64,000 nt of DNA, taken from positions 124,001-188,000 of IMG/VR virus record IMGVR_UViG_3300044680_000280; one strand, 5' to 3'. Made by a program: the position numbers and the translations under genes. The notes beneath the pieces were generated by a model. It saw nothing but the letters and a program-made list of their open reading frames with translations, was not told the DNA's origin and ran no database searches. The first letter of the stretch is position 1. The number at the start of each line of letters is the position of its first letter. This document shows, in pieces, positions 12,363 through 62,497 of this stretch.

Positions 12363-12860
12363 TCAGGATGTGCCGTGAATGGCTTCGTATAGGTCACGGA
12401 TAGATACTACCATATTCTCCCCACTCACGTCAACTTCTATCGTCTCCTCTTCACCTACACAATTGTCCCTAAGTAGAATACGGAGTCTCCGACCCATGTC
12501 CTGCTCCGCGGACGTTAGGGTCGGTTCAATCGAATCCGGGTTGACCTTGTCAATAACCGAAAAGTTCATGAGCACTTGCTGAATGGGCGCCCCCGGCATT
12601 TCACGAAACGTCCAGCGAATGCGATATTCTCCTAGATTTGCGTCCAAAGGAACGATAATGCTCGCAAAGTACTCCCCTAGCGATGGGTTGACGGGCTGAC
12701 GACGCGGAGCCCCAACGAGAACTTCGCGTCCCGTCGTAAAGTCGTAGAGAGCGTAGCTAATCTCGGCAGCGTTCTCGGGGGTTCCGTTGACGTTGTCGAG
12801 AAAAATGCTCAAGTCGTTACGACCGAGCTGCTGTCCCTTGTAAAAAGCGCTACCGCTCAT
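12363..12860 (-). CDS. Split-intein N-precursor: 133-aa N-extein (Ig-like structural domain) plus IntN (32 aa)
   Basis: Ends ...RILLRDN|CVGEEETIEVDVSGENMVVSIRDLYEAIHGTS*, an intein block A (Cys1...I-x-DL) followed by a stop. Confidence 0.82.
   Translation of the reverse strand: MSGSAFYKGQQLGRNDLSIFLDNVNGTPENAAEISYALYDFTTGREVLVGAPRRQPVNPSLGEYFASIIVPLDANLGEYRIRWTFREMPGAPIQQVLMNFSVIDKVNPDSIEPTLTSAEQDMGRRLRILLRDNCVGEEETIEVDVSGENMVVSIRDLYEAIHGTS
12366..12461 (-). mobile_element. IntN fragment of an atypically split intein (32 aa)
   Basis: Cys1 codon at 12461-12459; block A-like sequence; acidic composition complementary to the basic start of IntC. Confidence 0.8.
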
Positions 12861-13186
12861 TTGACCTCTTCGAGATCCTCCTGTGGCACAACGTGTCGAC
12901 CGTTCTTCTCGAGCTGTACATAGAACTTTCCAAACGGAATGTATTTCTCGATGGTACCCACGTCTCCGTGCCAGTGAGTTAAACCGTGAGAGGGCAGAAC
13001 CCTTACCCTCGTGCCTGGCTTCAGGCTAGACGGCACGCTCGCAACGCGAGCGACAACCTTCTTGACAATGAGGGCGTCCTGAAAATCTCGAAGTTCTCGA
13101 CTCATGGCCGTCTTTCCTTGGGACTTCCTCTTACTGGGAAGCCAATCCTCGTTTTCTGCGTCTAGGTGTATCTCAAGCTTGGCCAT
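12857..13186 (-). CDS. Small protein with C-terminal SH3/KOW-like domain (109 aa)
   Basis: Likely ATG at 13186 coupled to the ART stop (TAATG); LKPGTRVRV...GDVGTIEKY...FYVQL is an SH3-like barrel pattern. Confidence 0.6.
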   Translation of the reverse strand: MAKLEIHLDAENEDWLPSKRKSQGKTAMSRELRDFQDALIVKKVVARVASVPSSLKPGTRVRVLPSHGLTHWHGDVGTIEKYIPFGKFYVQLEKNGRHVVPQEDLEEVK

Positions 13187-14415
13187 TACTTCTTCTTTCC
13201 ACCACGTCCAACACACTTACCGTGTATGGCTGAAGCTCCCATCACAACCATCTCAGCCTCACCAGTATAATCTGTATTCGTTTTGGCTTTTGGGTTTGCA
13301 TCGGATCCCATGATCGGGGTCGTCAGATAGGACCAAAAGATATTTTCCACGGGAACCTTCATTTTGAAGGCGGTTCCAAAGCCGGTAGCTTGAGACGGGT
13401 CCGAGGAAAAGCTTGAAAGTTCCCTTGTCTTCACCACGAGGTCATCCCCCGGCTGAGCCTTATCGGCACCTTGCCCATTGACTCCCCTGAACAAGGTGAG
13501 TTCCTTCAATCCAAGATGCTTAAAAACAGCACGGTTGAATTTCAGAATCTCGTGGGCGTACTCTTTCATTGCTTGGTCCTTGGCACCCCTGGCCCGACCC
13601 TCTTTGGCGTCCGCCTCTTCCTTGGGAAGAGTGTAGCCCTCAACCCCGAGACTGCTCATGAGCCCATTGATCTCATCGGAGGGTGGTTGACCAGAAGAGT
13701 CCGTCCAGTCCATGACCAACCCATTATGGACCTTGTTCAACTTGGAATTGGACTTCAAATGCTTTTCAAAGTACTCCCCGATCATGTACCCGTTGACGTG
13801 GAGTAGCTTCTCAGCTTCAGACAACTGAGAGAAAGCCTCCTTAGCGACGGAGGGGGTGTCCTTGTCAGACCTGGCACCGAATTTCTTCTCGTATTCGGCA
13901 ACACCCTTCTTCATCTTCCCAATCACCTCATCCAAAGCCGCCTTGTGTTTGGAAAGGGTCTCATCTACTTCCTTGTCCGTAACGATGAGTTCCCCTTTTG
14001 GGGACATTCCAACAGACTTCTTGCTCTCCGTCCTTTTGCCATTGGACTTCGAAGGTTCGGTCTTGGGCTTCGAATCCGTGGACTTATCGGACTCTTCCTT
14101 AGGGGCTTCTCGAGGTATGGGGTCCCTCTTCTCAGGATTCTTCTTGGCCCACTCGTGGTACTCTTTGAGGGCCTTCCGAAAAACGTCTTTATCCTTGAGC
14201 GCCGTCGTAAAGGAGACATCCTTGAAACGGTCTCTGGTTTCTGGATTCGGATTGGGAACCTTTTCCGATCCGCCCTGATGGACCTTATCTAGCCACTCTT
14301 TCCACCGAGGCGGTACCCCACCCTTAGATGGATCCTCTTCCTGAGCGTCCGCGGTGCGGCCCAAGAATCGGGTCATAACTCTCAGAGCAATAGGGTTCAT
14401 TCGACTCAATCCCAT
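13186..14415 (-). CDS. ADP-ribosyltransferase-domain protein (R-S-E class)
   Basis: C-terminal TLFRGV (R), LSSFSSDP (SxS), GEAEMVV (ExE) in canonical order; charged low-complexity N-terminal half. Confidence 0.78.
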   Translation of the reverse strand: MGLSRMNPIALRVMTRFLGRTADAQEEDPSKGGVPPRWKEWLDKVHQGGSEKVPNPNPETRDRFKDVSFTTALKDKDVFRKALKEYHEWAKKNPEKRDPIPREAPKEESDKSTDSKPKTEPSKSNGKRTESKKSVGMSPKGELIVTDKEVDETLSKHKAALDEVIGKMKKGVAEYEKKFGARSDKDTPSVAKEAFSQLSEAEKLLHVNGYMIGEYFEKHLKSNSKLNKVHNGLVMDWTDSSGQPPSDEINGLMSSLGVEGYTLPKEEADAKEGRARGAKDQAMKEYAHEILKFNRAVFKHLGLKELTLFRGVNGQGADKAQPGDDLVVKTRELSSFSSDPSQATGFGTAFKMKVPVENIFWSYLTTPIMGSDANPKAKTNTDYTGEAEMVVMGASAIHGKCVGRGGKKK

Positions 14416-46010: not shown

Positions 46011-46742
46011 TTACCACTCCACCGGTTCACCCTCGGGGCCGAGGAGATCAGATTGTCGAAGAAGAAAGAGATCCTTAGGACACGCGAACAGTCGAACGCG
46101 GGCTCCCTTGTCCATCTTATACGTTGTTTTTCGCATACCCGTGCCACACTTGGGACAAGCAGGCTTTCGTGTACCTATGTCTCCGGAAGTTGCACGGTAC
46201 TGCCTATTGGCGGCAGCCCAATATGCCGCCGTCTTGGCAGCATGTTGCTGGATACGAAGCTCTACGAAATTCGAGGCGACTCGATAGAACTTCTGAATCT
46301 CCGAACGCATCGTAGTATCGTTACCACCCACGGTGGCATATCGCCTCCAAAGAGCGTCGTATGCCGCAACCTCATTCGCGCCCTTTGACCAAACCTGCGC
46401 CAAGTCTCGATGAAATCCGGCGGGGAGACCCGTGGTCTCCCACAGCTTGCTCGAGGATGCCCAAACCTCTCGAGCTTTTTCAGTATCGAGACCTACGTAG
46501 GTCTGGTCAATAAGGGACGGAGGAAGCCAGTTTGACACACTCGGCTGAACCACAACAACGTCGTCTGGAAAGATGCGATCAACCCCGTAAGGAAACTGGA
46601 CATCCAGAACCCCGAGTCCTCGATGCACAGCCGTGACTCGACCCACGAACGGAGAAAGGGCGAGCCCTCCCGTTCCTGGGGCGAATCGTTGGACGACATC
46701 CCCGACCTTGAATTCACGGACCAGCTTCCAATAGTCAATCAT
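46011..46742 (-). CDS. Hypothetical protein with SH3-like N-terminus and C-terminal Zn-ribbon-like motif
   Basis: FKVGDVV...VGRVTAV; CPKCG...ACPKD. Confidence 0.6.
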   Translation of the reverse strand: MIDYWKLVREFKVGDVVQRFAPGTGGLALSPFVGRVTAVHRGLGVLDVQFPYGVDRIFPDDVVVVQPSVSNWLPPSLIDQTYVGLDTEKAREVWASSSKLWETTGLPAGFHRDLAQVWSKGANEVAAYDALWRRYATVGGNDTTMRSEIQKFYRVASNFVELRIQQHAAKTAAYWAAANRQYRATSGDIGTRKPACPKCGTGMRKTTYKMDKGARVRLFACPKDLFLLRQSDLLGPEGEPVEW

Positions 46743-47236: not shown

Positions 47237-50200
47237 TCAGCCGAGCTTCTTGATCGTCTCGAGAAGAGGCTGGTAGGCCGCTCGGAGCTGGGGATTTGCA
47301 TGTGCAAGTCGAATGACGGCGGAACGAAGACCGTGGTAGGCAGCGTCCTTCTGCTGGCTCTGACCGTCTTCCTTCTTCTCTTCCTTGCCGTCTTCCTTCT
47401 TCTTCATGTGCTCGAGAAACTGGGGAGGAACCTGTCCGCCCTGCTTCTGGTCTTGCTGAGCCGGTTCCTGGCCTTCTTCCTGAGCAATCTTGTCAGAGAG
47501 CTCAACGAGGTCGTACGCAAGAGCGGGATTCGAGGCGTACTTCACGGCGAGCTGTCGAATGCGAGCGGCGGTCTTCATGGGCTTTTCCTCTCCTGACGGA
47601 GGAGCATAAGGGGATTTGGAACTTGATTTCACTTTGTGGATTCGATGTGTGTACTCGAGACTGCCCGAAGCGCCGGGCGGGGTTGACTTGATCCGATGCT
47701 CAAGCTCATGAGGGCCCATGCCCTCTTCATTGAGCTTTTTTGCATCTTTGGGGTCGTACCCATTCTCTTTGAGAATTTTCTCGAGTTCGGAAAGCTCGTT
47801 AGGATGAGCTGAAGCAATAGCGACCGTAATCGGTCCTTTGATGTTGCTTCGATCCGTCAGCAGAGTGTCCGTCTGCGAGTGGCCGCCCAACTTTGCGAGG
47901 AGCATATTGTAAAGCGGGGGTTGCAACCCGACGGAATACTTGCCATTTTCGCAAGAGCGAAGGGCTAAATCGAGAGCTGCCCTGAGCTGGGTGTCTCGAT
48001 AAATGCCATCGATCGCGGAGGACAGAACAGGAGCCTTCAACCATTCTCGAGCGGACTTCAGAATCGTGTCAAAGTCCTTGTCTCCGAGGTCTCGCTGATG
48101 CACTTGCCCCCAACCCACATATGGAGCGAAGCCCTCATGTCCTTTGGGGTACGGCTCGACACCCCAATAGACGGCCTGCTTCGCCCTCTCGGCAACTCGA
48201 GATACGGAATCACCCATCGTTCTGATGGGCTTACAAATAGAATGTTTGCGTGAACGATCAACGACGGACCAAAGAAGATGGGCGGTCTTGTCTGTGTTGG
48301 CTACTCCCATCTGACGACGGTAGCGGTCAAATAGCTCATTCTTGTTCTTCTTGAGGTCTTCCTTGCTACCACGCGATTGCAGATAGCCTTCCGGTCGACG
48401 CGGGGGCTCAGGAAAAGAGGACTCTCCTTTTTCTCGATAGGGGTCCTTCTTCTGTTTCTTAGCCTGTTCCTTCTCGTACTTCTTATGCTGAAATTCCCAG
48501 CGTTTCAAACTATCCTCGTAGTCGTCATACTCCTGCTCCTGAACGAGCTTTTTGACGAATGGGAACTTCTCGGGAGCGAGGGTTCGAATCTTCTCAACCA
48601 CTCGTTCCCGAAGGCTCTCCTTAGCTGGAACGAGATCTCGCATATTTTCAGGATATTCCTTGGCCCGTTCGTCGAAGAATTCTCCCATGCGACGAACCTT
48701 GTTGGCAATGTCGCGCGGAGTCTGGTGTTCCGAGATGGCATCGGGTGAGTCGGGGTCCAGAAAATCGTGTCGAGCACTGAGATAATCCGCCGCCTGAGAC
48801 CACCCGACGGCTATTTGTTGGGCGGCCGGGTCCCCGTCAAAGTGCTTCAGTAGTTTACCAATCTGCTTCACCGTGCCCAAAGAGGGGGGCGGGGGCAGAT
48901 CCTCATCGAGCTCCGGATCGTATTCTTCCCCCTCTTGCTTAGCCCTCTCCTCGTGCTTTTCGATCAGCTTGTCTCGCTTGGCCTGCCAGCGAGCATAACG
49001 ATCGGTATCTTCGCCCATGATGCCACGCTTAACTGCATCGGCGAAAATGTGCTTGGCGCTTTCCTTGGCTCTAGCTAGGTGGTCCTCTTCCGTCTCTCCA
49101 GGCCTACGACCGAGGGTTGTGTCCGCAATGGCGCCCAGGAGTTCTCTTGGGGCTCCCGTCTTTTTCTCAAGCCGGTCAACTTCCTGCTCCCTTGCCGCAA
49201 GGGACATCGCAACAACGAACATCTGATGTTTCTGGAGAGCGGCGGCCTGCTCTTTGGGGTGAAGTTTCGCGAACGGAACCTCTTGTCCCGTACTATCCAC
49301 GCCAACACTTGGAGGACGAACTTTCGATGGATCGGTCTCGTAACCGGTCTCCTTTACGAGGTCAGTGAGCTCACCGTCCTTAGCGTGAAGCTTTGCTGTA
49401 TTGTAATTTTCGACCAGATCCCTCACGTCATCGGGGTGCAGGTCCATGTCGCGAAATTTTGCGGCCACCTCAACAGGAAAGTTCTCAATGAGTTGCCTGG
49501 TTGCCTTATCTTTTTCCGCCTCTGTCACCTTTCGACGTGGAATCTTCGGCGCAGGTTTGTGGATCTCGTGAGCCGCATCAATGAGGTCTCCGACCGTTCT
49601 AACCCCCTTAGGAAGGTCGAGATTTTTCAACTCGGGAATCGACTTTTTGAGGTCGACGTACCTAGCGTGTTCTCCGAGTTTCTTCTCAAGGGACTCAGAT
49701 AGCTCGCTATCGGGATTCGAAAGGTCTTTCAGAAGATTCGAGAAGTGGGGATCCTTCTCGGCCATCTCCTTGAGGGGTTGGAGATTCGCCTGTAGGTTCT
49801 GCTCTTCTTCAAAGCGCTCCTTCCAGGAATACTTCTCCTCATCGGAAAGCCGATCGAACGGCACATGCTTTCGACGCTTCTCGTCGAAAAATAAGGGGTT
49901 CCCGTCATCGTCCTCCGAGGTACTGTACTCTTTGGACGCCCACTCTTTGAATTCAGGGGTTTCGTGAATCTTAGACTTTAGGAATTCGTCAACCTCGGCC
50001 TTATCGTCTGGATGCATCTCCTCTCGAGGGGATACTCCGAGGGCCTTCTGGACAGTCTCGACCAGCTTGTTGACAGCATCTTCCGACCTATCCTCATCCC
50101 TGGGTTTTGGCTCTTTTTTCTCGGGTTCGGGCTTGGTCGCCTGAAGGGCGTCAACGAGATCCCCGACACTCTTTACCCCTGACGGAAGACCAGAAACGCT

Positions 50201-51118
50201 TTTCGATATGTCCTCAGCGGGATTGATCGTATTTCGGAGCTGATAAAGGGAGTTCGGGTCCTGACCGTCGATTTGATGAACAACAGTCTTGAGGGCTGGA
50301 TCCTTCTCGGCCAACTCGCGAATCTGCTGACCCGCATCGGAAACCGCCTTCTGTTTCTCAGGACTGACTTGCGACTCAGGCGCCTTAGGCCCTTCCTGCT
50401 TTTTCTCGGCCGGTGCAACCTTCTGAGAGGGCTTGCCGTGGGGGGCACTTTTCGCCCCGTGAATTGCCTTACGAACGTCACCAATGGTCTTGAATTTGAA
50501 CTTCTCGAGAACAGGGAACTTCTTTAGAAGTCCAGCTTTTTCCAGGGGGAAATCGTTCGGAAACCCACCCAACGACTTAGGATCTTTGGAGAAGAGGCTC
50601 TTGGCAAAGGACTCCAGGTAGGGGTCCTCCTTCATCTCATCGCCGAAATCGGCGTAGAGTTGCTTGTTATCCTCGTGAGGTGGGGCACTCTCGGGCTTGG
50701 GCTCTTCTGGTGAGTGAGGCTTGGGCACCTCTGGCGCCGAGCCAGAGTCCGACTTCTCCTCCCCTTCGGGTTCTACCTTCTCGTACTCGGATCCCTTCTC
50801 TTTTAGGGTATCCTTGTTGACGTAGCCCACCCACCCAGTATCCTTGTGCCGAACTTTGACCTTGTTGGTGATGTCCAACTCATCCGCCTGACGTTGTAAC
50901 CACCGGTTCACAACCCGTCCGCCAACAGATCCTCCGATGTCCTTCCGGTTCATCGAGAGGTCCTTGTCGGGCTTCGAATCGGGGTCCTTGTCGGGCTCGA
51001 TGAGCTCTCGGCGCTTGTCATGCCGAGGCGGCTTGACCTTAGGAGCAGGACGTACAAGGCGCTCGGCCTCATCGTTCTCCCGCTCAAAGTGGTCCTTGGT
51101 GGCGCGACGATCACCCAT
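47237..51118 (-). CDS. Large charged protein (1293 aa), candidate internal head/ejection protein
   Basis: E/K/D/P-rich; immediately downstream of the portal; multiple K/R-x-A motifs. Confidence 0.65.
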   Translation of the reverse strand: MGDRRATKDHFERENDEAERLVRPAPKVKPPRHDKRRELIEPDKDPDSKPDKDLSMNRKDIGGSVGGRVVNRWLQRQADELDITNKVKVRHKDTGWVGYVNKDTLKEKGSEYEKVEPEGEEKSDSGSAPEVPKPHSPEEPKPESAPPHEDNKQLYADFGDEMKEDPYLESFAKSLFSKDPKSLGGFPNDFPLEKAGLLKKFPVLEKFKFKTIGDVRKAIHGAKSAPHGKPSQKVAPAEKKQEGPKAPESQVSPEKQKAVSDAGQQIRELAEKDPALKTVVHQIDGQDPNSLYQLRNTINPAEDISKSVSGLPSGVKSVGDLVDALQATKPEPEKKEPKPRDEDRSEDAVNKLVETVQKALGVSPREEMHPDDKAEVDEFLKSKIHETPEFKEWASKEYSTSEDDDGNPLFFDEKRRKHVPFDRLSDEEKYSWKERFEEEQNLQANLQPLKEMAEKDPHFSNLLKDLSNPDSELSESLEKKLGEHARYVDLKKSIPELKNLDLPKGVRTVGDLIDAAHEIHKPAPKIPRRKVTEAEKDKATRQLIENFPVEVAAKFRDMDLHPDDVRDLVENYNTAKLHAKDGELTDLVKETGYETDPSKVRPPSVGVDSTGQEVPFAKLHPKEQAAALQKHQMFVVAMSLAAREQEVDRLEKKTGAPRELLGAIADTTLGRRPGETEEDHLARAKESAKHIFADAVKRGIMGEDTDRYARWQAKRDKLIEKHEERAKQEGEEYDPELDEDLPPPPSLGTVKQIGKLLKHFDGDPAAQQIAVGWSQAADYLSARHDFLDPDSPDAISEHQTPRDIANKVRRMGEFFDERAKEYPENMRDLVPAKESLRERVVEKIRTLAPEKFPFVKKLVQEQEYDDYEDSLKRWEFQHKKYEKEQAKKQKKDPYREKGESSFPEPPRRPEGYLQSRGSKEDLKKNKNELFDRYRRQMGVANTDKTAHLLWSVVDRSRKHSICKPIRTMGDSVSRVAERAKQAVYWGVEPYPKGHEGFAPYVGWGQVHQRDLGDKDFDTILKSAREWLKAPVLSSAIDGIYRDTQLRAALDLALRSCENGKYSVGLQPPLYNMLLAKLGGHSQTDTLLTDRSNIKGPITVAIASAHPNELSELEKILKENGYDPKDAKKLNEEGMGPHELEHRIKSTPPGASGSLEYTHRIHKVKSSSKSPYAPPSGEEKPMKTAARIRQLAVKYASNPALAYDLVELSDKIAQEEGQEPAQQDQKQGGQVPPQFLEHMKKKEDGKEEKKEDGQSQQKDAAYHGLRSAVIRLAHANPQLRAAYQPLLETIKKLG

Positions 51119-51154: not shown

Positions 51155-52987
51155 TTATCCGAATCGGTTGTCCGGCGGGGCCGCTTCCTCTTCCTTGATC
51201 TTGAGACCCAGGTACTCGGCAATCTTCTTGGTGACATCGCTCTTTTCAGCCAACGACTGACCAACCGCACTATACAGACCACGAGACATCTCGGTGAATA
51301 TCGCGTCATTGACCGTGAACATGTCATTCTTGATCTTCCGAGCCGTGTCGTCCGGATCGATATTGAACATCTCGAGAATGAGGTCGATCGAGATCGAACC
51401 CTTCTGGTAGAGGTTGAAGAGAGCGTCGTAGGTGTCCTGCGAGTCGCGGAGCGGCAAACGAGTGAAGGAAAGACGGGGGTACAGGATGACTTCTTCGCCC
51501 CACTTATCCTTCTCAACGAATCCCTTGCGACGGGCAACGGGTTTGAACAAGTACTCTTCGACGTATTCTTGGATCATCTCTCGAAGGAATAGGTATCGCT
51601 GATTGATGACCTCGAGCTTCAAGCGGTCGCCAGAGTACAGGGTCTCACCAGAAAGCAAGGATTCCGTAACGCCTAGACCCGTGCGTAGACGACGTTCTGT
51701 TTGCTCGTATTCAGCCGAAAGGTCGAGAAGACGGTCTTTAGACCCCATTTCCTCCCAGTGAACCTCATAGTTGGCAATGATAGAGTAGTCAGGATCGACA
51801 AGGGACAAGTCGACCTGCTCTCGGAGGTCATCAGCATCGGCGTCAGAGATGTCCTCCGCCCAAACGATGCGCTTAGGAGTCATCGCACGGTCGGCAATCT
51901 GAGTTTGAGCCTGACGAAGTTTTTCACGATAATACAGAGTTCGAAGACACCGATCCAGAATACTCTGCCCCAGCTCCTCGCCCGCCTGCTTGCGGCTCGA
52001 GAGCATGTACACGAAGCTTCCTTCGTCGGGATCCGTGCCAAGAGGAATGAGGCGCCCCTGCCCGATGTACTCACGTACTTCCTCGGGCATCTCTTGGACC
52101 ATCTCCTCAGCGACGGGATCTCCTAGTTTGGCTTCCTCCAACAAGGCACGATCTCGCTCTGACGGAATGAGCTCAACACGAACCTTATCCGAAAAGGAGA
52201 ACGTTTTGACTTCGACCTGATCGATCGGAAAGATGATGAGACGATCCCACCCTTGGTAGTGCTTCTGGTAGTAGGAGAGTTCCTCTTCCTCTCGGTTGTC
52301 TTTTTCGATGTATCCTTTTTCGAGAACTTCTTTCGCCTCGCCGTCCTCCATAAGAACGTTCTTCGGAACCGTCTGTTCGCGATAACCAACGTCGGGCGGA
52401 ACTTGAACGTCGGAATCTTCAGCAAAAATAGGGCAAGTACCGTCCAACCATAGGTGGTGAACTGCCATAATGAGCTTCTGAAAGAGTTTGACCTTCTTCG
52501 TCATTCTCTCAAAGAAGCTGAGAATGTACTTGCCATAGTCCTCAGCACTTTCGAATCCCTTCGGAAACGTACGAGGTTTGGGTGCTGCAAGGCGTACCTT
52601 CGAGAGCGGGAGTTCTGTATGAAGGTCGATCGCTTGCGCTACGATCTCATCCGTATTGTAGAAGTGTCGGTAGATCTCCCGCTTTTCCCGAATCGATTGC
52701 GGAAGCTGAAGAAAGTCTGTCGATAGTTGCGGAGAAAAGAACGAGCTGGAGCCCGACTGTACCGTGTTGGCGCCCATCACGGGATCGATGGCAAAGGCGG
52801 AGGACTTGTTACGATAACTCCCCATCTGGCGAGCTTGCTCCCTCGCCATCCGCTCCTTGGCGGTCAACGGTTGCATCTTGTTCCCGTACGGCTGCGAGAC
52901 ATACGGACGGTTTCTGGCTGGCGCCGAGGGCACCACCAGTCCACCACGTACATTCGTGACGTTCGTGAACTTACTACCTAGGGGCAT
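51155..52987 (-). CDS. Portal protein (610 aa)
   Basis: Position downstream of TerL; portal-like helices (IVAQAIDLH, SILDRCLRTL, TGLGVTESLLSGE, LSFTRLPLRD). Confidence 0.85.
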   Translation of the reverse strand: MPLGSKFTNVTNVRGGLVVPSAPARNRPYVSQPYGNKMQPLTAKERMAREQARQMGSYRNKSSAFAIDPVMGANTVQSGSSSFFSPQLSTDFLQLPQSIREKREIYRHFYNTDEIVAQAIDLHTELPLSKVRLAAPKPRTFPKGFESAEDYGKYILSFFERMTKKVKLFQKLIMAVHHLWLDGTCPIFAEDSDVQVPPDVGYREQTVPKNVLMEDGEAKEVLEKGYIEKDNREEEELSYYQKHYQGWDRLIIFPIDQVEVKTFSFSDKVRVELIPSERDRALLEEAKLGDPVAEEMVQEMPEEVREYIGQGRLIPLGTDPDEGSFVYMLSSRKQAGEELGQSILDRCLRTLYYREKLRQAQTQIADRAMTPKRIVWAEDISDADADDLREQVDLSLVDPDYSIIANYEVHWEEMGSKDRLLDLSAEYEQTERRLRTGLGVTESLLSGETLYSGDRLKLEVINQRYLFLREMIQEYVEEYLFKPVARRKGFVEKDKWGEEVILYPRLSFTRLPLRDSQDTYDALFNLYQKGSISIDLILEMFNIDPDDTARKIKNDMFTVNDAIFTEMSRGLYSAVGQSLAEKSDVTKKIAEYLGLKIKEEEAAPPDNRFG

Positions 52988-54571: not shown

Positions 54572-54577
54572 GGGTGC

Positions 54578-55105
54578 CTAAATCGAAATTTGAATGGTCA
54601 TGTACCCACCCGTGGAGGCGGAGGGAACTTGAGAAACGAAGCCAACGTACAAAAGATTGGGCGCTCTGGGGTCTCCACTGAGAGTCCACTCGTCCTCCGA
54701 GGTGTAAAGACCCCTCAACGAAAACCTGAGGCGCTGGCTTGGCGTGTAGACAATGGGAACGAGAGGCCCGGACATGCGAGACGCGTATGTGAACTCCTCG
54801 TATTGAGGGGTCAGAATGAGCCAGCTACCAAAACCCATAACCGCGTACTTGTAGTAAGGTTGAGCTTGGGTCATTGACGTGTACTGGTCAGACGATTCGT
54901 TTGACCCCCAAATCAGAAAACCGGCCACGTACCCGTCAGAGAGCGTGACAACACGATCGTCCGTGTCCGAATTCGACCACTGAACCCCAATACCGCCCGG
55001 CCACCCGAGAACGGAGAGGTTCTCGTCGACGGTAGGCGTGAAAGTTTCTCCCTTGACCAGGGTGTAACAGTCGCGAGTACGGGGAATCTGAGTGTCAACC
55101 GACAT
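54578..55105 (-). CDS. Decoration-like protein, tandem paralog 1
   Basis: Same motif set. Confidence 0.65.
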   Translation of the reverse strand: MSVDTQIPRTRDCYTLVKGETFTPTVDENLSVLGWPGGIGVQWSNSDTDDRVVTLSDGYVAGFLIWGSNESSDQYTSMTQAQPYYKYAVMGFGSWLILTPQYEEFTYASRMSGPLVPIVYTPSQRLRFSLRGLYTSEDEWTLSGDPRAPNLLYVGFVSQVPSASTGGYMTIQISI

Positions 55106-55389: not shown

Positions 55390-57399
55390 CTAACGCATGC
55401 GACCGCGGAACCCGCGACTTATGCCTGCTCGTGGGCTCATTCGCTCAGTGAATACCCCATGCTTGCGCATACGGGACATGTGGTATCCCTGCAAACTAGG
55501 ACCGGTTGGATTGCGAGTCTGCTCAAGTCCCTTATAGGTGTGCTTGAGGTTCGACATCTTGTCAGCAGTGAGCCAAACCGCTCGGACAAGAGCGTCCGCC
55601 TGGTCGTCGTGGTATCCACTTTTCTCAGGCGCCCCAACTATGACAATGTTCCTTGACACCTGCTCGGCTTGAAGGGTTAGGAGCTCAGAGATGAGGGGAG
55701 AGTGCTTGGATTGGGAGCCGGCCCCCGGAATTGGGTAGTCGTAAAGAACGAGCTTGTGGTCAAGCATGAAGGACTTTACCGTTTGGTACATTTTCGACGT
55801 TGTGTCCCGAGTGAAGAACTCACACTTGATATGACCGTACCCTCGCTTGATGAAGTCCTGCTCCATCGACATACCCTGCCACCGGTCGTAAAGACCGTCC
55901 GTAATGTGGAATCGCTTGGTCAGACCTATGAGCCACTCCAAAATCTCGTCAAAGTCTAATCGGTCCTCATCCTGCATACGGCGGGCATAATCGCAGGAGT
56001 AGTCGGTAAGGTGCGGATTGAGCTCCTTCCAGTCGTAACCGGCACGCCAGTACTCATGATAGGCCAGAACGATCTTACCGTCTAGAGGGTACGTAATGGC
56101 AACAGCGGTACCGTCTCGATCCCCTGCGGCACTACCGATACCGATGTCAAGCCCTAGTTGGTGCGGATACTTCGGGAACCCAACCATAATGGGGCGACGA
56201 ACTGGATCAACACAGTCGATGAGGTCCTTCTCCCTCTCAATCCAGGCACGGACTCGATCCGAGAACCGAGCCCCATGCTCAGTTTCAAAAGTTGTCGGAT
56301 CCTCGTAGTACTTCTCTCGATAGTAGTCGGAAGAAACCGTGGGATTGATCTCCCAGGTGGGCATCTGAATTGCCAGCTTGTTGTACGCTCCGTCCCCGCC
56401 CTTCATGGCTGTCTGAAAAAGCTCGTAAAACTTGCCAGACTTGTTGAGTGGCGAAGAGATGCAAATGATACGTCCCTCGTTCGGCCCTATAGGCTTGGTC
56501 GAGTCCTCAGGATCTTTCGGAGAAAAAGCCGCCTTGCTAGGAGAGATGGCGTCGTAGATATCCTTTGCAGACGACTGACCCTCATCAATAAAGTGAGCCA
56601 TCTCATCGAGAATCATGACGATGTTACCAGCACCGCGGAGACCCTTGGCGATGCAGCTTTTGAACGTGACTCGAATCGTCGCCTTGCCGTTCAGAGACTC
56701 GTAGCGACCGCCCGCCGTACGGTAGGACGTACCAAACTTCTCGATGTCGTGAGGCGTACGAAACTTGATATCACTGAGAGTGTTAGAAGCAATGTACGGT
56801 TTGAAGTAGTCGCATCGAGCCAAGTGGGAAGTCACCTCATTGAAGAGAAGCCCCGCCTGATCCTTGTCCGTAGCGACGGAGATGATTTGGATCCGGTTGC
56901 CTGAGGGTAATCCGTAGTAGCTCTGAGGATGGTGTAAATTGAGGAGACGGTAAACCTCGTAGCTGGCAAAAATACCTGCCAAAGTAGTCTTTCCTCCGCG
57001 ACGGCCGATGGGCAAAATGAGCTCTCGGCGCTCATGGTCCTGCTCCGCGATGTTGCAGCGGCCCTCACTATAGAGGTACTTCAAGTACTCGACCTCAGTG
57101 AATTGATACTTCACATGAGTCGCAAGCATGTCCTTGATCTCGATCGTCTTCGTCGTGTCGTCGAGAGGAATGTGGTAGTACAACTTGACAATAAAGCGCT
57201 GTACTGGGTAAAGGGTCATGCCTAGACCCCAGTCGCTCTCAATGTACTCAATGATGTTGAAAATGCGTGGCTGCTTAGGTCGAACAATGACGTCATCCTG
57301 ACCGACGTTCTGGTCTAGAACGGCTTCAACTCTCTGTTTTGCCTCTTTGCCAGCTTTTCGAATGAGGGCCGACAGACCCCCTGCTTCATCTTTCGCCAT
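55390..57399 (-). CDS. terL: Terminase large subunit
   Basis: Walker A IGRRGGKTT, Walker B MILDEMAHF, coupling motif ISSP, RNase H nuclease LGLDIG and HDDQADA. Confidence 0.95.
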   Translation of the reverse strand: MAKDEAGGLSALIRKAGKEAKQRVEAVLDQNVGQDDVIVRPKQPRIFNIIEYIESDWGLGMTLYPVQRFIVKLYYHIPLDDTTKTIEIKDMLATHVKYQFTEVEYLKYLYSEGRCNIAEQDHERRELILPIGRRGGKTTLAGIFASYEVYRLLNLHHPQSYYGLPSGNRIQIISVATDKDQAGLLFNEVTSHLARCDYFKPYIASNTLSDIKFRTPHDIEKFGTSYRTAGGRYESLNGKATIRVTFKSCIAKGLRGAGNIVMILDEMAHFIDEGQSSAKDIYDAISPSKAAFSPKDPEDSTKPIGPNEGRIICISSPLNKSGKFYELFQTAMKGGDGAYNKLAIQMPTWEINPTVSSDYYREKYYEDPTTFETEHGARFSDRVRAWIEREKDLIDCVDPVRRPIMVGFPKYPHQLGLDIGIGSAAGDRDGTAVAITYPLDGKIVLAYHEYWRAGYDWKELNPHLTDYSCDYARRMQDEDRLDFDEILEWLIGLTKRFHITDGLYDRWQGMSMEQDFIKRGYGHIKCEFFTRDTTSKMYQTVKSFMLDHKLVLYDYPIPGAGSQSKHSPLISELLTLQAEQVSRNIVIVGAPEKSGYHDDQADALVRAVWLTADKMSNLKHTYKGLEQTRNPTGPSLQGYHMSRMRKHGVFTERMSPRAGISRGFRGRMR

Positions 57400-58080: not shown

Positions 58081-58087
58081 TTGGATC

Positions 58088-58459
58088 CTACCGATCTGAC
58101 CGTACCCCCTCAGTCCTAATGAGGTACTGGGATAGATTGTAAACAGTATCGTAGCCCCGATCCTTGGGAACGGATCGATCAATAGCCTTTTGCATGTCAT
58201 TTCCCGTCTCAACGAGGTTGAGAACGCCGGCGTGATTTGGCGTGAGGTTAAACACATCCTTGGGCTGAATATCGCGGCGATTCATCTCCGCATCTTCAAG
58301 CATGGTCTCACCATTTTCCCGCACGATCTCACGAGAAATGCCACGAGGGGCATTTACGGGCTTCGTCAGCTTTTTCGCGTGCTGACGAGCTCCGGGAGGC
58401 TGATCGGCCACCCTCTGAAAGCGTGCGGCGACCTTGAGCGCGATCAAGGTGTCGGTCAT
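58088..58459 (-). CDS. Hypothetical protein (123 aa) with leader LIALKVAARFQRVAD
   Basis: ATG; leader resembles that of the ART protein. Confidence 0.65.
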   Translation of the reverse strand: MTDTLIALKVAARFQRVADQPPGARQHAKKLTKPVNAPRGISREIVRENGETMLEDAEMNRRDIQPKDVFNLTPNHAGVLNLVETGNDMQKAIDRSVPKDRGYDTVYNLSQYLIRTEGVRSDR

Positions 58460-58461
58460 GA

Positions 58462-60495
58462 TCAGACCTTGACCCTGGTCCTCCCGAGCACGATGTCGAA
58501 GGACGCGGTTTTCACGGGCTCATTGAGCTCAATGTCCATACCGTGATTTTGAAGTTGGTACTCCGTAATGACGGACATACCGCTTGGAGCAAGAATACTT
58601 GCGGGGTCGACCGACTGAGTCGAAGGACCGGAAGCAAGAATGGCTTGCTGCTGAGCGGACTTGTCGACGTAGGGAGGCTCGACCACGAGCGGTTTGTTCA
58701 ACTTTGAACAGGTCATGTTGTGGTTGTGTACGCAGCTACCGCACTTATCGCCGAGTTTGGCGTAGGGAACCTGCTTGGCACGGAACAACCGAGACACCTC
58801 TTCACATCCGTGACCGTAGTCGTCATAGACAGACGGATTGACGTAGTAAATGCCCTGTAGTCCTTGCTCGGCAATAACGCTCTTCAGATCTTCCTTGGAG
58901 GCGGCAAGGTCTCGAACCTCGTATCGCGTCTTGAGAGCTCGAAGCAAATCCTTACCGTACAGCCCTTCGTTCATGTACTTAGAAGCGGTTTTCACGATGT
59001 TTCGCTTCGTCGTACCACTAGCGACATGTTCTTGACGGGGACCACCAGCCCACTGATAGAAGAGGTCCATACGCTCGGCCGTCCCAGAAGGTTTACCCTG
59101 CTGAGAAGAAACTCGATCGTGAATGCTCTTGAGTGCGGAGCGGGGGTCAGATGTCCCAAGAGAGGCCGATTTCTCCCAAGCAGGAATGCGTCCGGCATTC
59201 TTGTGTTCGAGAAGAACGGCCTCTACGGTATCCCACGTGTAGAGGTCAGAGGCCGCCTTTACCAGGGGCTTCCCGTAAAGCATGCAGCGACTGATCTTGT
59301 TGTAAATGCAGGATTCGCACTTGGAACCCGCCACCATGGCACGGACTCCCGGGTTGTGTTTTGCCAGGAAGTCGGCACCCTCATGGCAGTCCTCGAAACT
59401 ATCTTGAGTCGAGTAAACCGCCCCCAGTAGACCGGCTTCCTTGAAATAAGGCTCCCACTCTGCGCGGGTCTCGGCAAGGTCACTCAAAGGAAAACTGACC
59501 TTGAGGGAGGAAGCCAGCTCGGCCGCCGTACGGCCCTTGAGAAGCTCCCGCCGAACGAACGCGATAATCGGTTTGGACTTCAGCTCCAGGTGAAGTTTTT
59601 CGTCCCGTTTCCGAGTCAAACTACTGGCCTGAATGAGGCGCTCACCCGATTCTTGAACGGGCATCACAGCAGGCTTGGGGAGCTGATTTTCCCCGACGCC
59701 CTTGTACACTGGGGCTTCCATCTGCGGCGCTTCCGCCAACATAGCGAGTCGAACCCGCTCTCTCGGAGTGGCATTGCTCGAAGCCTGAATGACTTTGCCG
59801 CGAGTTTGTTGGAGCTGCTCAACCTCAGCCGCAAGCTGGTCCGTGTACGGAACGTTGAGAACAATTTGCTTGTGGAAGACAGAGCAATTCGTTGTTCCGC
59901 CGACCTTCTTGGCATGGATGCATCCGCTGCATTCGGGCTTTGCAACGATGTACTTGGCATCGCAAGCGAAACGTCGAACGAAGGTGGTGGTGTTTTTGGG
60001 CGACTGGGCACAGTTAGGAAAGTCCGACGCCTGAATGTATACCGGCCCTAGGAGTCCCCTCTCCTGAAGCACAGAAGCGATGACATCACGATTGGCCTGA
60101 AGGGTCGGTAGGTCAAATCGAGCCGTAAGAAGCCGCTTCAAGTTGGATGAGTCCGTGGACTGCATCATGGCGTAACGTGTGATCTTCGCAATATCCTCGG
60201 CGCGGTCACGAAGCTTCCCGTGCGCCTGAGACAAGTCCCCCATCGTGTGAACCTCCCCCGCTCCTGGGAAGGGCTTCACCACCTGCTTGTTTGGCACAAG
60301 ATACGAGGTCGTCGGTTTGTCGTCTCTAGCCCAAAGTCCGACGAGGTCTGGAGAAATGTCCAGATTCTGCTTCGGTAGAGCCCCCTGGCCTGGAATCTCT
60401 CCAGCACGGTACTCCGCGTCATCGATCTCAAGCCACTTGAGATCCGAAACGCTACCTTCCTTCAGGAAGTCACTGAGATCACCGAGTTCAGCCAT
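58462..60495 (-). CDS. 677-aa protein with three Cys-rich internal repeats
   Basis: C...C-x2-C-[IV][HY]...C...K-[PQ]-[LI]-V repeated three times. Confidence 0.7.
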   Translation of the reverse strand: MAELGDLSDFLKEGSVSDLKWLEIDDAEYRAGEIPGQGALPKQNLDISPDLVGLWARDDKPTTSYLVPNKQVVKPFPGAGEVHTMGDLSQAHGKLRDRAEDIAKITRYAMMQSTDSSNLKRLLTARFDLPTLQANRDVIASVLQERGLLGPVYIQASDFPNCAQSPKNTTTFVRRFACDAKYIVAKPECSGCIHAKKVGGTTNCSVFHKQIVLNVPYTDQLAAEVEQLQQTRGKVIQASSNATPRERVRLAMLAEAPQMEAPVYKGVGENQLPKPAVMPVQESGERLIQASSLTRKRDEKLHLELKSKPIIAFVRRELLKGRTAAELASSLKVSFPLSDLAETRAEWEPYFKEAGLLGAVYSTQDSFEDCHEGADFLAKHNPGVRAMVAGSKCESCIYNKISRCMLYGKPLVKAASDLYTWDTVEAVLLEHKNAGRIPAWEKSASLGTSDPRSALKSIHDRVSSQQGKPSGTAERMDLFYQWAGGPRQEHVASGTTKRNIVKTASKYMNEGLYGKDLLRALKTRYEVRDLAASKEDLKSVIAEQGLQGIYYVNPSVYDDYGHGCEEVSRLFRAKQVPYAKLGDKCGSCVHNHNMTCSKLNKPLVVEPPYVDKSAQQQAILASGPSTQSVDPASILAPSGMSVITEYQLQNHGMDIELNEPVKTASFDIVLGRTRVKV

Positions 60496-60512
60496 CGAAG
60501 GGCTCCTTCACG

Positions 60513-62228
60513 TCAATTTCCTGGCTTTGCATATGGTCCCTGGTCATCTCGTTGATTGGTCCAGTCGGGTCGCATGTTCGGGGTGGTATCGTCCCACTTG
60601 GTGTACGGCTCATCGACACGTTCGTACCTATACCCTGTATCCATGAGATCCTTATCGAAAGTCTCGTTGACCGCCGTATCGTCCCCTGGAAGGGCCGTCT
60701 GGGCAAAAAGGAACTCGTTGTCGTGTAGGGGACGGTGATAGAGGGGACGAGGCGGGCCCTGCGGGCTACTGTTTGGCAATTCGCTTTGACCCATCACGGG
60801 ATTCTCCGTAGGGCCAGTGATTGTGTCCTGGTCGTTGTCTTTGGGGCCCGTGTAATAGTCCGCTCTAGCAACCCCATTGCCGTCTTCGTCGGGAAGCCCA
60901 CTGCTTGGGCCGGGTTCTGACGGATTCAGAAAAAGAGCTTGAACCTGTCTGATTCGCTCTCGGGCAGTCCTATAAATGGTATCGAGCTTTTGCTCAACCG
61001 TCTTCGTGGTGTCGGTCTCCGAACGATCGTGGGTTTTGCCTCCCGGGTCATACGGGAGCTCAGCACGGGGGCCATAAACGCCCTTGTCCCCCTGATCATT
61101 GTACGCTGAACCTCCACCAGGATTCTTAGCGCCCTGGCCGTGAGCATCGTTGCCGTTTCCACGTCCGATACCAAAATCGAACCCCTCACTCGGAGTGTGA
61201 TCCGTCGGCATGGCTGACTCAGCCACTGGGGCCTGAGGAGCCGCCTGTCGACCACCGTCGATCTGGTACGCCGGCTGATTGCCGCGATCCTGGCTCATGG
61301 GCTCGCCACTGACGCCTTCGTCCGTAGACCAATCGTCCTTCGGGTCCTTCTTTTCGTCTTGATTGACCGAACCGAACGGCCCAGTCTGGTCCGTGTCCGC
61401 ACGGTCGAGGTGTTCGACCCTAGGTCCTGGCAGAGTGTTGGGATTCACCGACGAAACAGCCAAAACAATCTCTTCGGCAATCTTCTCGATAGGTGAACGC
61501 CGATCGTACAAGGAGGCCAACTTCGGACGGGCCTTGTTGCCACTCCCACCCTCCCCGGGCTTAGGAGCCTTGCCCGGAGCGGCATCCCCGCCGCCCGGAA
61601 GGTCGGAGGCGGGCGGCTTGCCTTCCTTCTCCTTCATCTTCTTGACCCAGGACGAGCTAGGCTTACCGGTCTTTTCGACTTCCTCTTCCTCCTCGTCCGT
61701 CTCCTCCTCAGAGTTATCGAGCATGTTCTCGGACTCTCCGATAAGTCGCTCTATGCTCGCGAGGTCGTCCTTCGAGAGTTCCCCGATCTTCGGTTTCCAA
61801 TGGGGGGCATTGATCTCATCGTGCACCGTGTCGGACACGGCAGAAAGGGCCTCGACAGCTTCGTAAATCTTCTGCCGAAGTTCCGTGACCTTCATGATGT
61901 ACCCACGGCCACCGAGCATGCCGTCGGGGCTCACCGTTGAGGACTTGACCCGGTTGAACAGACGGTAGGCCTGAAGGGCGTGTCCAAGAGAAACACTCAT
62001 TGCCCAAAGCATTTTGGCCATGGGTTTCAAGGACTTGGGATCAAACTTATGATCCTTAGGAATCTGTCGATTTGCGGGCCCGTTGGGACCCTCTGGCAAC
62101 TGACCCGCGGACCCCGGCACGGAACCAGGAACTGGCATTTCCTGGTCGTTACCCTTGGCGACACGGATGTTCTCCGCTCGTCTCAGGGCTTCTTTGACTT
62201 GAGCTCGGTAGTCCACAATGCCTCCCAT
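60513..62228 (-). CDS. Largely disordered protein (571 aa), candidate internal head protein
   Basis: Helical N-terminal domain, then a P/G/D-rich tail with K/R-x-A motifs. Confidence 0.65.
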   Translation of the reverse strand: MGGIVDYRAQVKEALRRAENIRVAKGNDQEMPVPGSVPGSAGQLPEGPNGPANRQIPKDHKFDPKSLKPMAKMLWAMSVSLGHALQAYRLFNRVKSSTVSPDGMLGGRGYIMKVTELRQKIYEAVEALSAVSDTVHDEINAPHWKPKIGELSKDDLASIERLIGESENMLDNSEEETDEEEEEVEKTGKPSSSWVKKMKEKEGKPPASDLPGGGDAAPGKAPKPGEGGSGNKARPKLASLYDRRSPIEKIAEEIVLAVSSVNPNTLPGPRVEHLDRADTDQTGPFGSVNQDEKKDPKDDWSTDEGVSGEPMSQDRGNQPAYQIDGGRQAAPQAPVAESAMPTDHTPSEGFDFGIGRGNGNDAHGQGAKNPGGGSAYNDQGDKGVYGPRAELPYDPGGKTHDRSETDTTKTVEQKLDTIYRTARERIRQVQALFLNPSEPGPSSGLPDEDGNGVARADYYTGPKDNDQDTITGPTENPVMGQSELPNSSPQGPPRPLYHRPLHDNEFLFAQTALPGDDTAVNETFDKDLMDTGYRYERVDEPYTKWDDTTPNMRPDWTNQRDDQGPYAKPGN

Positions 62229-62497
62229 TAGCCCTTGAGGGGCTCCCCATTGTCGTCGAAGAGTCTCTCGATGAAGAAGTTCCCGCCTTCCTTCTTCAAC
62301 GCCCAGAGGTCTCGCTCGCTGCGATGAACGAGGGTCTCGGCGGACACTCGGACGAATTCCGAGATGTCCCCAAGCGAAGCAACTCGACGGCGACCCGTCT
62401 TGTGCGGAGAAACGATTTGCGGTTCCCGGGACAATAGAGCATCCATACCAGGAGAACCGGACATCTCGAAATCGCTGAAATCAAACGGCTTAGACAT
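62228..62497 (-). CDS. Hypothetical protein (89 aa)
   Basis: TAATG coupling to the next gene. Confidence 0.6.
   Translation of the reverse strand: MSKPFDFSDFEMSGSPGMDALLSREPQIVSPHKTGRRRVASLGDISEFVRVSAETLVHRSERDLWALKKEGGNFFIERLFDDNGEPLKG

Follow-up and report, generated by a model that had tools for sequence, protein, structure and literature searches.

Encapsulins, which are not viruses, dock unrelated cargo enzymes inside an HK97-fold shell by means of a short peptide at either terminus of the cargo, and this peptide is not cleaved. In phage T4, an N-terminal capsid-targeting sequence (CTS) is common to the internal proteins and Alt, and head proteins are processed by the protease gp21 (PMC3012670), while in phage P1 fewer than 30 residues at the N-terminus of DarB suffice for entry into the capsid (PMC9024508). 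Many head and ejection proteins of the giant phages phiKZ and SPN3US carry N-terminal propeptides and are cleaved, and the proteases of these phages (gp175 and gp245, respectively) also remove their own C-terminal part (PMC10052503). Assemblin, the herpesvirus protease VP24/pUL26N, makes its cut after Ala (PMC4498786). One ADP-ribosyltransferase (ART) known to be packaged is T4 Alt, and polyvalent ART/zincin proteins have been predicted to be packaged and injected (PMC5512222).

We analysed an uncultivated huge phage with a 406.7-kb genome (~407 kb), in which the window, meaning the whole 64,000-nucleotide stretch of DNA given above, contains a head-assembly module that runs from terminase through portal, 1293-aa protein, protease and Gln-rich scaffold to capsid protein. 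Two short motifs, a leader peptide and the tripeptide K/R-x-A, are non-random and conserved. A sequence-only reading of this DNA had proposed that the leader routes cargo into the prohead and that the protease encoded at 44188 cleaves after K/R-x-A; because both underlying observations were confirmed and extended, we infer, with confidence a little above even, that the leader is a capsid-loading signal and K/R-x-A the cut site of the head protease. The head-module features and other proteins with K/R-x-A sites are as follows.

62228..62497, minus strand: 89-aa protein with an R-V-A-S-L-G site (62366-62392).
58462..60495, minus strand: 677-aa protein with several V-K-x-A-S sites.
55390..57399, minus strand: large terminase (phrog_2, 1.5e-17; head-module context).
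51155..52987, minus strand: portal protein (phrog_16240, 5e-25; head-module context).
47237..51118, minus strand: 1293-aa protein, encoded between portal and protease.
50882-50923, minus strand: internal leader-like segment of the 1293-aa protein (residues 66-79), conserved in position.
48278-48292 and 47531-47578, minus strand: conserved K/R-x-A sites of the 1293-aa protein.
47258-47332, minus strand: C-terminal helix-NP-helix element of the 1293-aa protein, the same element as the sister-clade leader.
46011..46742, minus strand: 243-aa head-module protein with two class-conserved K/R-x-A sites.
46374-46388 and 46224-46238, minus strand: the two sites of the 243-aa protein, kept in 11/11 and 10/11 homologs.
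44188..45681, minus strand: prohead protease (PHROG head maturation protease phrog_18299, 4e-10).
42720..44144, minus strand: Gln-rich scaffold-like protein, its K/R-x-A sites conserved in the alignment.
44073-44105, minus strand: conserved scaffold sites R-T-A-A and K-V-A-D.
43836-43850, minus strand: conserved scaffold K/R-x-A site.
43710-43724, minus strand: conserved scaffold K/R-x-A site at the border to the Gln-rich linker.
42005..42625, minus strand: 206-aa protein, its gene lying between those for scaffold and capsid.
42047-42061, minus strand: V-K-V-A-P site close to the 206-aa protein's C-terminus, kept in 13/14 homologs.
41095..41976, minus strand: major capsid protein, HK97-like (phrog_2522, 3e-51).
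41890-41949, minus strand: three K/R-x-A sites in the first 28 residues of the capsid protein, two of them conserved in the sister clade.
37670..38506, minus strand: 278-aa protein with the N-terminal doublet K-T-A-S / K-V-A-G (38441-38473).
36422..37666, minus strand: 414-aa protein with several K/R-x-A sites in a row near residues 293-308.

The gene at 44188 proved to be the prohead protease for which it had been taken, as indicated by its PHROG match together with structural matches to assemblin and gp21. Located between the portal and the scaffold/capsid genes, it also matched the prohead protease of Rhodococcus phage E3 (5e-19), with no match in Pfam. The top three of 48,161 chains in a structural search were the assemblin of VZV (Z 9.3, rmsd 2.8 over 113 residues), T4 gp21 (Z 8.0) and the assemblin of HCMV (Z 7.1); the Foldseek match to gp21, taken alone, was not significant. 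The catalytic domain has the assemblin/T4 gp21 fold, and H55, H126 and S177, the candidate catalytic His and Ser residues, were invariant in 119 protease sequences. The protein carries a Cys-rich insertion and is laid out as a catalytic core (approximately residues 46-262), a linker of hypervariable sequence and a C-terminal domain that is helical and conserved, with K/R-x-A sites at its N-terminus and a candidate self-cleavage site, K-A-A-R at 44806-44826, at the end of the core (core/linker junction), where a K/R-x-A is kept in 111/114 homologs.

The K/R-x-A sites listed in the sequence-only reading were all present, and the enrichment check that it had suggested revealed an excess over the shuffled background in the head module only. 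Against global shuffles plus 15- or 40-residue block shuffles, [KR]xA was observed 131 times in the head module (94-96 expected, z 4.2), [KR]xA[small] 59 times (34 expected) and K[TSV]A 25 times (8 expected, z 6.5), while the control patterns Ax[KR], [KR]A and [KR]xxA were flat in the module and K/R-x-A was not enriched in window genes at 1-35 kb. KxA ranked first of 400 a-x-b patterns in an unbiased scan, and the genome-wide distribution of K/R-x-A peaked over the head module. The excess was also tested as a DNA motif, an origin that was rejected. Applied to T4 as a positive control, the same statistic gave z 5.1-6.3 for the known gp21 motif. The enrichment was replicated in 8/9 relatives and in the head module of LR745208.1, a replication that is not fully independent because the relatives are homologous. 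K/R-x-A doublets were over-represented in the head module (p 0.001), as were sites in the first 40 residues (p 0.002); the sites were more conserved than eight control patterns, the class-invariant ones sat in variable context, and the residue after the Ala was enriched for Ser (1.7 times) and Ala (1.4 times). The location of sites at domain boundaries, which had been claimed more widely, was supported for residue 288 of the protease and residue 142 of the scaffold.

Such an excess might instead reflect a structural or compositional habit, for example of Ala/Lys-rich helices or DNA-contacting internal proteins, and mark no cleavage sites at all. The evidence on K/R-x-A is statistical, T4 head proteins showed a mild excess of the same motif (z 2.2), and N-terminal K/R-x-A sites are found also in the large terminase, a protein that is no part of the capsid, all of which would suit this alternative. 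However, the enrichment survived 15-residue block shuffles with mirror and shifted patterns flat, and a compositional habit accounts poorly for the N-terminal bias, the doublet excess, the class-invariant sites in variable linkers and at domain borders, or the nearly universal protease junction, and we therefore consider it distinctly unlikely. Judged by its sequence statistics, K/R-x-A behaves like a processing motif, being head-specific, N-terminal, found in doublets, conserved, present at the protease junction and replicated. Cleavage is predicted after the Ala, a guess drawn from the analogy to assemblin and the bias towards small residues after the Ala. Alternatively, the protease could share the phiKZ and SPN3US specificity, [S/A/G]-x-E with the cut behind Glu; the true site would then be the conserved A-D-E that follows the ART leader, with K/R-x-A as no more than its left flank. 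The motif is established for SPN3US gp245 (PMC10052503), and A-D-E-G-E-E follows the leader in most ART homologs, but this acidic stretch is specific to the ART family, and [SAG]xE and AxE were not enriched in the head module (z 0.1-0.5), were depleted in that of LR745208.1 (z -2.1) and showed no preferential conservation, which makes a cut after Glu very improbable.

The leader (RVxxR[F/Y] segment) is an N-terminal peptide of ~12 residues, M-[D/N/S]-x-L-x-x-R-V-A-A-R-[F/Y], carried by 14 mutually unrelated proteins spread over the 406.7-kb genome. The four segments quoted in the sequence-only reading are present in the genes named there, with similarity far beyond chance; the shared segment is thus real, but its extent had been underestimated, as it forms a genome-wide family of 14 carriers and not a feature of four proteins. 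The core regex matched 30 proteins genome-wide (4.7 expected from 200 shuffles) and 13 within the first 30 residues (0.77 expected, maximum 4 in 200 shuffles), and in a decoy-calibrated profile the 14 N-terminal carriers scored 12.9-16.5, against 6.6 for the best decoy from ten shuffled proteomes. The family was also recovered de novo by an unbiased all-vs-all comparison of N-terminal 35-mers. Leader codons differed between carriers, which showed no relatedness outside the leader. The following leader-bearing genes lie in the window.

58088..58459, minus strand: p123, a 123-aa head-module protein with an N-terminal leader (residues 1-19, 58403-58459).
13186..14415, minus strand: ADP-ribosyltransferase-like predicted cargo protein (Pfam DRAT, 3e-4).
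12857..13216, minus strand: small ORF with a leader variant at 13037-13105 and a K-T-A site directly before it.

The ART-like protein comprises 409 aa from the first start and 404 aa from an internal Met, with the leader at 14347-14400 (residues 6-23 from the upstream start), then an acidic Gly/Pro linker and a conserved body; the internal Met is where the database homolog P0001 begins, which places the leader at the extreme N-terminus. PF07357 was precomputed for many ART homologs, and the leader is kept in ~20 of those from huge-phage contigs. In the small ORF, which is similar to the N-terminus of the ART homolog P0006, the variant follows an internal Met that may be the true start, and in p123 the leader is followed by R-V-A-D. 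The carriers range from 107 to 606 aa with a single recognisable domain each, and include two ADP-ribosyltransferases (DRAT-like and ART-PolyVal), three HExxH proteins, a topoisomerase IB and a J-domain protein. By analogy, these domain types support the view that the carriers are virion-packaged, injected proteins, and a portable terminal peptide on effector-like proteins is consistent with capsid targeting of the kind known from the T4 CTS and from the N-terminus of P1 DarB. Three of the 14 are encoded in the mixed-strand part of the genome, and their late expression may be in doubt. Sec and Tat signal peptides were rejected as an identity for the leader, since the linkers after it are charged or rich in Pro/Gly and lack a hydrophobic stretch.

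The leader core R-V-A-A itself fits K/R-x-A-small, which raises the alternative of a leader without any role in targeting, serving solely as a propeptide or high-affinity protease site (R-V-A/A) by which enzymes stay inactive or are tagged for processing. This core is the only universal K/R-x-A among the leaders, and in four proteins an internal leader copy directly follows another K-x-A site, as the alternative would lead one to expect. An R-x-A-D site downstream of the leader occurred in 10/13 cases here, 8/25 in relatives and 6/15 ART homologs; as the leader's own core is the only universal site, such a downstream cut site was rejected as a general feature and belongs to a subset. With no general second site in this clade, many leaders may be kept, or cut inside the helix, the latter a poor fit with a helix-docking role. 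Against a propeptide-only function, C-terminal leader copies would release only 4-8 residues if cut, and the conserved Leu at -3 and the Arg-Phe/Tyr following the Ala would form a helical hydrophobic/basic stripe atypical of an extended protease substrate. Moreover, LR745208.1 retains the K/R-x-A enrichment although it does not have this leader and bears a different one, and the leader would therefore carry information beyond the cut motif; we regard the propeptide-only alternative as quite improbable.

Orthologs in five related huge phages retain the leader, and a DNA pattern for it gave 53 matches in these genomes versus 17 for the reversed control, most of them 2-11 codons past a start codon and some C-terminal; the relatives also carry the leader on 14 or more further ORFs that lack a homolog here. 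Leader genes in relatives cluster near the protease gene: in L027 an ART homolog gene is directly upstream of it, and genes for topoisomerase IB and p123 orthologs are found 9-15 kb upstream, with the p123 leader kept in three relatives, two of them at the same distance. In the sister clade, LR745208.1 bears a different shared leader, a helix-NP-helix peptide, on 9 proteins, one of which is encoded between the scaffold gene and the 206-aa homolog, just upstream of the MCP gene, and K/R-x-A follows at a fixed position after the leader in 9/9.

These positions bear on the alternative that the leader binds a host factor, a chaperone, a membrane or another phage-made compartment and serves as a sorting or regulatory tag unrelated to packaging. 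The genome does hold at least one further tag of this sort, the tail W-[D/E]-H-L-L at the C-terminus of ~16 proteins, and several sorting codes may therefore exist; a J-domain protein and a topoisomerase IB could equally act in the cell after synthesis. However, leader genes lie in or beside the head module both here and in relatives, an internal leader sits at a conserved position in a head-module protein, and the sister clade encodes its leader among the head genes, with the head-enriched motif after every copy. The leaders also lack the hydrophobic core of Sec or Tat signals, and ARTs and zincins are typical packaged effectors, so that a tag with a destination other than the prohead seems unlikely.

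Under the capsid-loading reading, the leader (L-x-x-R-V-A-A-R-F/Y), predicted to be a short helix of basic and amphipathic character and placed at the extreme N-terminus, or in rare cases the C-terminus, of many unrelated effector-like proteins, would act as a docking peptide for a putative binding partner and bring its carriers into the assembling prohead, to be packaged and later delivered with the DNA, as with the T4 CTS and the P1 DarB N-terminus. The assemblin-fold protease would cut after Ala in K/R-x-A before a small or polar residue, thereby trimming N-terminal propeptides from the capsid protein, the scaffold and minor head proteins, freeing its own core from the C-terminal domain and fragmenting the scaffold, and it might also clip the leader itself at R-V-A/A. 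More tentatively, and as less likely than not, we suggest that the huge phages of this group load a large, fast-changing arsenal of separate effector enzymes into the capsid through clade-specific, interchangeable terminal address peptides, R-V-A-A-R-F in this clade and the helix-NP-helix peptide in the sister clade, each coupled to one conserved, assemblin-like cut motif. In that case, sequence alone could reveal every injected protein of uncultivated phages, the leader swap between clades would point to a co-evolving receptor, and further tags, such as the W-[D/E]-H-L-L tail, might address other destinations.

Compared with known systems, the locus resembles encapsulins in having a short terminal peptide on unrelated enzymes, with docking putative here. 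P1 offers a signal known for one protein, whereas at least 14 proteins share the putative signal in this phage. The carriers contain the same domain types as the polyvalent proteins of Iyer, Burroughs and Aravind (2017), namely ART-PolyVal and zincin-like HExxH, but their assignment as polyvalent proteins was rejected, since they are separate single-domain proteins each with a leader and not fusions in a giant polypeptide. Unlike in phiKZ and SPN3US, for which no shared short leader has been described, the A/S/G-x-E motif is not enriched here. As in T4, where the proteins are injected, a short N-terminal peptide is common to otherwise diverse proteins including an ADP-ribosyltransferase, and a protease of the same fold is accompanied by a three-residue motif statistically enriched in head proteins. 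However, the leader has no sequence similarity to the T4 CTS, and the cut is predicted after Ala with a basic P3, whereas the T4 motif is L/I-x-E with the cut behind the Glu. In this clade, a predicted cut site closes the signal in some proteins and not in others, and the capsid protein, small and HK97-like, has its Gln-rich scaffold encoded separately. With herpesvirus assemblin, the locus shares a predicted cut after Ala before a small residue (YLQA-T and VQA-S in herpesvirus) and the succession of protease core, release site (self-cleaved in herpesvirus, candidate here) and C-terminal part, and differs in its preference for a basic residue at P3 and Val at P4, its Cys-rich insertion and its separate scaffold gene. 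The predicted specificity would be closer to assemblin (Ala at P1) than to T4 or phiKZ (Glu at P1). Collectively, the leader and K/R-x-A would constitute a new variant of the T4-type scheme of targeting leader and protease motif.

The sequence-only reading had quoted four similar segments, from an ADP-ribosyltransferase-like protein (ART), a 123-aa head-module protein (p123; 58088-58459, minus strand), the 1293-aa protein at 47237-51118 and an ORF at 12857, and all four are present in the sequence. A loose core pattern for this roughly 12-residue RVAARF peptide, hereafter the leader, matched 30 times genome-wide and 13 times within the first 30 residues, compared with 4.7 and 0.77 in shuffled proteomes (200 shuffles; maximum 4). 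With a profile whose calibration used ten shuffled proteomes, we found 14 proteins that carry the leader at the N-terminus, scoring 12.9-16.5 (best decoy 6.6), along with copies at internal or C-terminal positions in genes clustered at genome 9-13 kb, and the same family was recovered without any prior pattern by an unbiased all-vs-all comparison of N-terminal 35-mers. These counts bear out the claim that a similar segment occurs in unrelated proteins. The consensus is M-[D/N/S]-x-L-x-x-R-V-A-A-R-[F/Y]; in a helix, this spacing would line up Leu, Val and Phe along one face, with the two Arg on the face next to it. A shared segment could reflect paralogy, which is ruled out because the carriers have nothing in common outside the leader, or a DNA-level element, which is ruled out by leader codons that differ between carriers; together these two observations argue for selection at the peptide level.

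Gene starts were called mechanically; database proteins, whose starts were called independently, likewise have the leader at the N-terminus. The ORF at 12857 probably starts at an internal Met, making its segment N-terminal also. In the 1293-aa protein the copy is internal, at a position conserved across the family, and it is duplicated in two relatives. We also observed that four proteins (genome 9370-12973, window 13037-13105) carry an internal or C-terminal leader copy directly after K-x-A (K-K-A, K-T-A, K-T-A and K-T-A), and it looks as if cleavage at these candidate sites would expose a new leader-like N-terminus.

The leader carriers include the following.
13186-14415, minus strand: DRAT-like ART
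ART-PolyVal protein
Type IB topoisomerase (2e-28)
J-domain protein
Three proteins with the zincin motif HEL[T/G]H
Several proteins without known function

T4 Alt is an ART that is packaged and injected. Polyvalent proteins, for which packaging is predicted (PMC5512222), typically have ART and zincin domains, and N-terminal capsid-targeting signals are established for the T4 internal proteins (PMC3012670) and P1 DarB (PMC9024508).

The leader extends beyond this genome. About 20 ART homologs from other long contigs keep it, followed by an acidic linker. A related-locus search with the ART in viral contigs returned no matches. When R-V-A-x-R-F/Y was written as a degenerate DNA pattern, five related genomes gave 53 matches versus 17 for the reversed control, mostly 2-11 codons past a start codon and in a few cases at the extreme C-terminus. 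Orthologs of the topoisomerase IB and of p123 (three relatives each) and of three other carriers keep the leader, and an ortholog of a protein with a C-terminal copy retains that copy; since the relatives additionally encode at least 14 leader-bearing ORFs without a homolog in this genome, the leader behaves as a portable module. Several leader genes adjoin the protease gene in relatives: on the related contig L027 the ART homolog lies immediately upstream of it, and orthologs of topoisomerase IB and p123 are located 9-15 kb upstream.

A different terminal element was seen at genome 280-363 kb, where about 16 otherwise different proteins have in common the C-terminal tail K-[S/T]-[V/I]-W-[D/E]-H-[L/M]-[L/M]-[E/D] (for example, genome 292515-293039, 294152-294868, 325252-326523, 334596-334871 and 362604-363119). 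A DNA pattern for it matched 11 times here (control, 0) and 0-2 times in four relatives, and the tail appears to be a lineage-specific terminal tag.

The second part of the proposal, a K/R-x-A cut motif, concerns the head module. A single virus contig of 406,734 bp contains the window at positions 124001-188000, and every gene in the window is encoded on the minus strand. In IMG/VR the 406.7-kb record is listed as a provirus, estimated to be 85% complete; no host-like genes were seen within the window, and no alternative genetic code is needed for this genome. The head module comprises the following.
55390-57399, minus strand: large terminase
51155-52987, minus strand: portal
47237-51118, minus strand: 1293-aa protein
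44188-45681, minus strand: prohead protease
42720-44144, minus strand: Gln-rich scaffold-like protein
Between the scaffold and capsid genes, minus strand: 206-aa protein
41095-41976, minus strand: HK97-like major capsid protein

Among deposited phages, the 485-kb uncultured phage LR745208.1, from a sister clade, is the sole similar record; IMG/VR contigs, the longest of 529 kb, yielded 17 related head modules. The capsid protein is conserved far above its neighbours, with 97% identity to the related locus L018 (protease, portal and scaffold, 68-78%) and 83% to LR745208.1 (32-50% for the same three). Three tandem paralogous genes of ~175 aa each (53514-55105), between portal and terminase, all match one single LR745208.1 protein. 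Residues 4-74 of the 1293-aa protein, a charged N-terminal module, match the C-terminal end of a separate 508-aa LR745208.1 protein (404201-405727), suggesting that a gene was fused in one clade or split in the other, and the 1293-aa family has two alternative C-terminal ends. A 494-aa plus-strand ORF (42741-44225), antisense to the Gln-rich scaffold gene, is most likely a repeat-composition artefact that misled the length-based gene caller. A 284-aa minus-strand ORF (57403-58257) overlaps p123 by 170 bases, so its true start probably lies further downstream. Outside the head module, three large proteins (21833-24685, 26356-29166 and 29214-30155) have a similar C-terminal end of ~50 residues and might be tail-fibre-like paralogs.

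To the sequence-only reading, K/R-x-A recurred in head proteins, and comparison with a composition-matched background upheld this. In a test set of 28 proteins from 35-63 kb, [KR]xA occurred 131 times versus 94-96 expected (z 4.2), [KR]xA followed by a small residue 59 versus 34 times (z 4.3) and K[TSV]A 25 versus 8 times (z 6.5), while the proteins of the 1-35 kb region had no excess. The excess was robust to whole-protein shuffles and to block shuffles of 15 or 40 residues; patterns that were mirrored or spaced otherwise were flat. An unbiased scan ranked KxA first of 400 a-x-b patterns and placed KTA among the top tripeptides, behind Gln/Gly repeats, and a genome-wide profile peaked over the head module. 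A DNA motif as the origin was ruled out, as the 131 sites correspond to 110 distinct 9-mers with ordinary codon usage. Sites occurred as doublets (26 versus 13, P = 0.001) and within the first 40 residues (28 versus 16, P = 0.002) more often than expected, including at the N-termini of the capsid protein, scaffold, protease and 278-aa, 133-aa and 571-aa proteins. Preferred residues were Val ahead of K/R, Thr or Val at x, and Ser or Ala in the position following the motif.

In alignments with relatives, conservation of K/R-x-A was 0.45 versus 0.21-0.38 for eight control patterns, and several sites were class-invariant amid varying surroundings: residues 21, 100 and 142 of the scaffold (142 marking the border with its Gln-rich linker), residues 944 and 1193 of the 1293-aa protein, and residues 120 and 170 of a 243-aa protein. 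Head-locus enrichment was replicated in 8 of 9 relatives (z 2.2-7.0). As a positive control, [L/I]-x-E, the known T4 motif, was enriched in the head proteins of T4 (z 5.1) and in its core proteins (z 6.3), and not in tail or terminase proteins. Another candidate, [S/A/G]-x-E, prompted by an A-D-E after the ART leader, was neither enriched nor preferentially conserved, and A-x-E, the giant-phage protease motif (PMC10052503), was not enriched in this head module.

The 44188 gene had been named as the protease, and its product has matches to a head maturation protease family in PHROG and to a Rhodococcus phage E3 protein annotated as prohead protease; Pfam and PDB sequence searches gave no match. 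Its family has >1,700 metagenomic relatives. A full-length AlphaFold model from 13 sequences was unusable in the catalytic half (pLDDT <50), while a catalytic-domain model from 119 sequences reached a pTM of 0.63 with core pLDDT >90. Among 48,161 representative chains, this model best matched VZV assemblin (Z 9.3), T4 gp21 (Z 8.0) and HCMV assemblin (Z 7.1), in line with the naming; Foldseek against PDB gave nothing significant (top, gp21, E 0.02). In 111 of 114 homologs a [KR]-A-A-[R/S/H] site falls exactly at the end of the conserved core and the start of a hypervariable linker, and this predicted cut site is the clearest case of a conserved K/R-x-A. The core also holds an invariant Cys-x-x-Cys ... 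Cys-x-His cluster at residues 185-203 (C187, C190, C201, H203), probably a small zinc-binding insertion, which to our knowledge is not known from assemblin or gp21.

A second K/R-x-A downstream of the leader was present in 10 of 13 cases in this genome (P = 2e-5), in 8 of 25 in relatives and in 6 of 15 ART homologs. A general downstream cut site is thus unsupported outside this genome, and the only universal candidate site is R-V-A-A inside the leader. In LR745208.1 the RVAARF leader was not enriched. That phage instead carries a different common N-terminal peptide, ~29 residues long and helix-NP-helix in shape (T-L-R-S-K-L-I-R-L-A-H-x-N-P-x-L-R...L-L-P-L-L-K-E-A), on nine proteins (for example, at record positions 15260, 226080, 351847, 390939 and 398566), one of them encoded between the scaffold gene and the 206-aa homolog, just upstream of the MCP gene; in the genome studied here the 1293-aa head protein bears the only copy of the element, at its C-terminal end. 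A fixed K/R-x-A ends the LR745208.1 peptide in 9/9 proteins, and K/R-x-A is enriched in that phage's head module (z 4.2) and not elsewhere in its genome. Leader and cut motif are therefore separable, the motif being common to both clades while the leader differs.

Collectively, capsid targeting by the leader, with a protease cutting at K/R-x-A, is the best available explanation, and one that these sequence comparisons partly support. If true, a 12-residue peptide would name, from sequence alone, the proteins injected by an uncultivated 400-kb phage, among them ARTs, metallopeptidases, a topoisomerase, a J-domain protein and many unknowns, thus directly listing candidate effectors of host takeover and anti-defence and giving a portable tag to load foreign proteins into large capsids; with a protease family of this size, the rules would apply widely. 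The protease would be a case in phages of a prohead protease that prefers Ala at P1, as the herpesvirus enzymes do, and this would bear on the common ancestry of capsid maturation in phages and herpesviruses. Cleavage by assemblin follows Ala (YLQA-T, VQA-S), and the enzyme frees itself from its C-terminal part (PMC4498786); both features have putative parallels in the protease described here. The signal-then-cut-site layout of LR745208.1, with its predicted cut site, is that of T4, and the whole may represent a new version of the T4-type scheme in which the cut preference is assemblin-like, belonging to a large uncultivated phage group.
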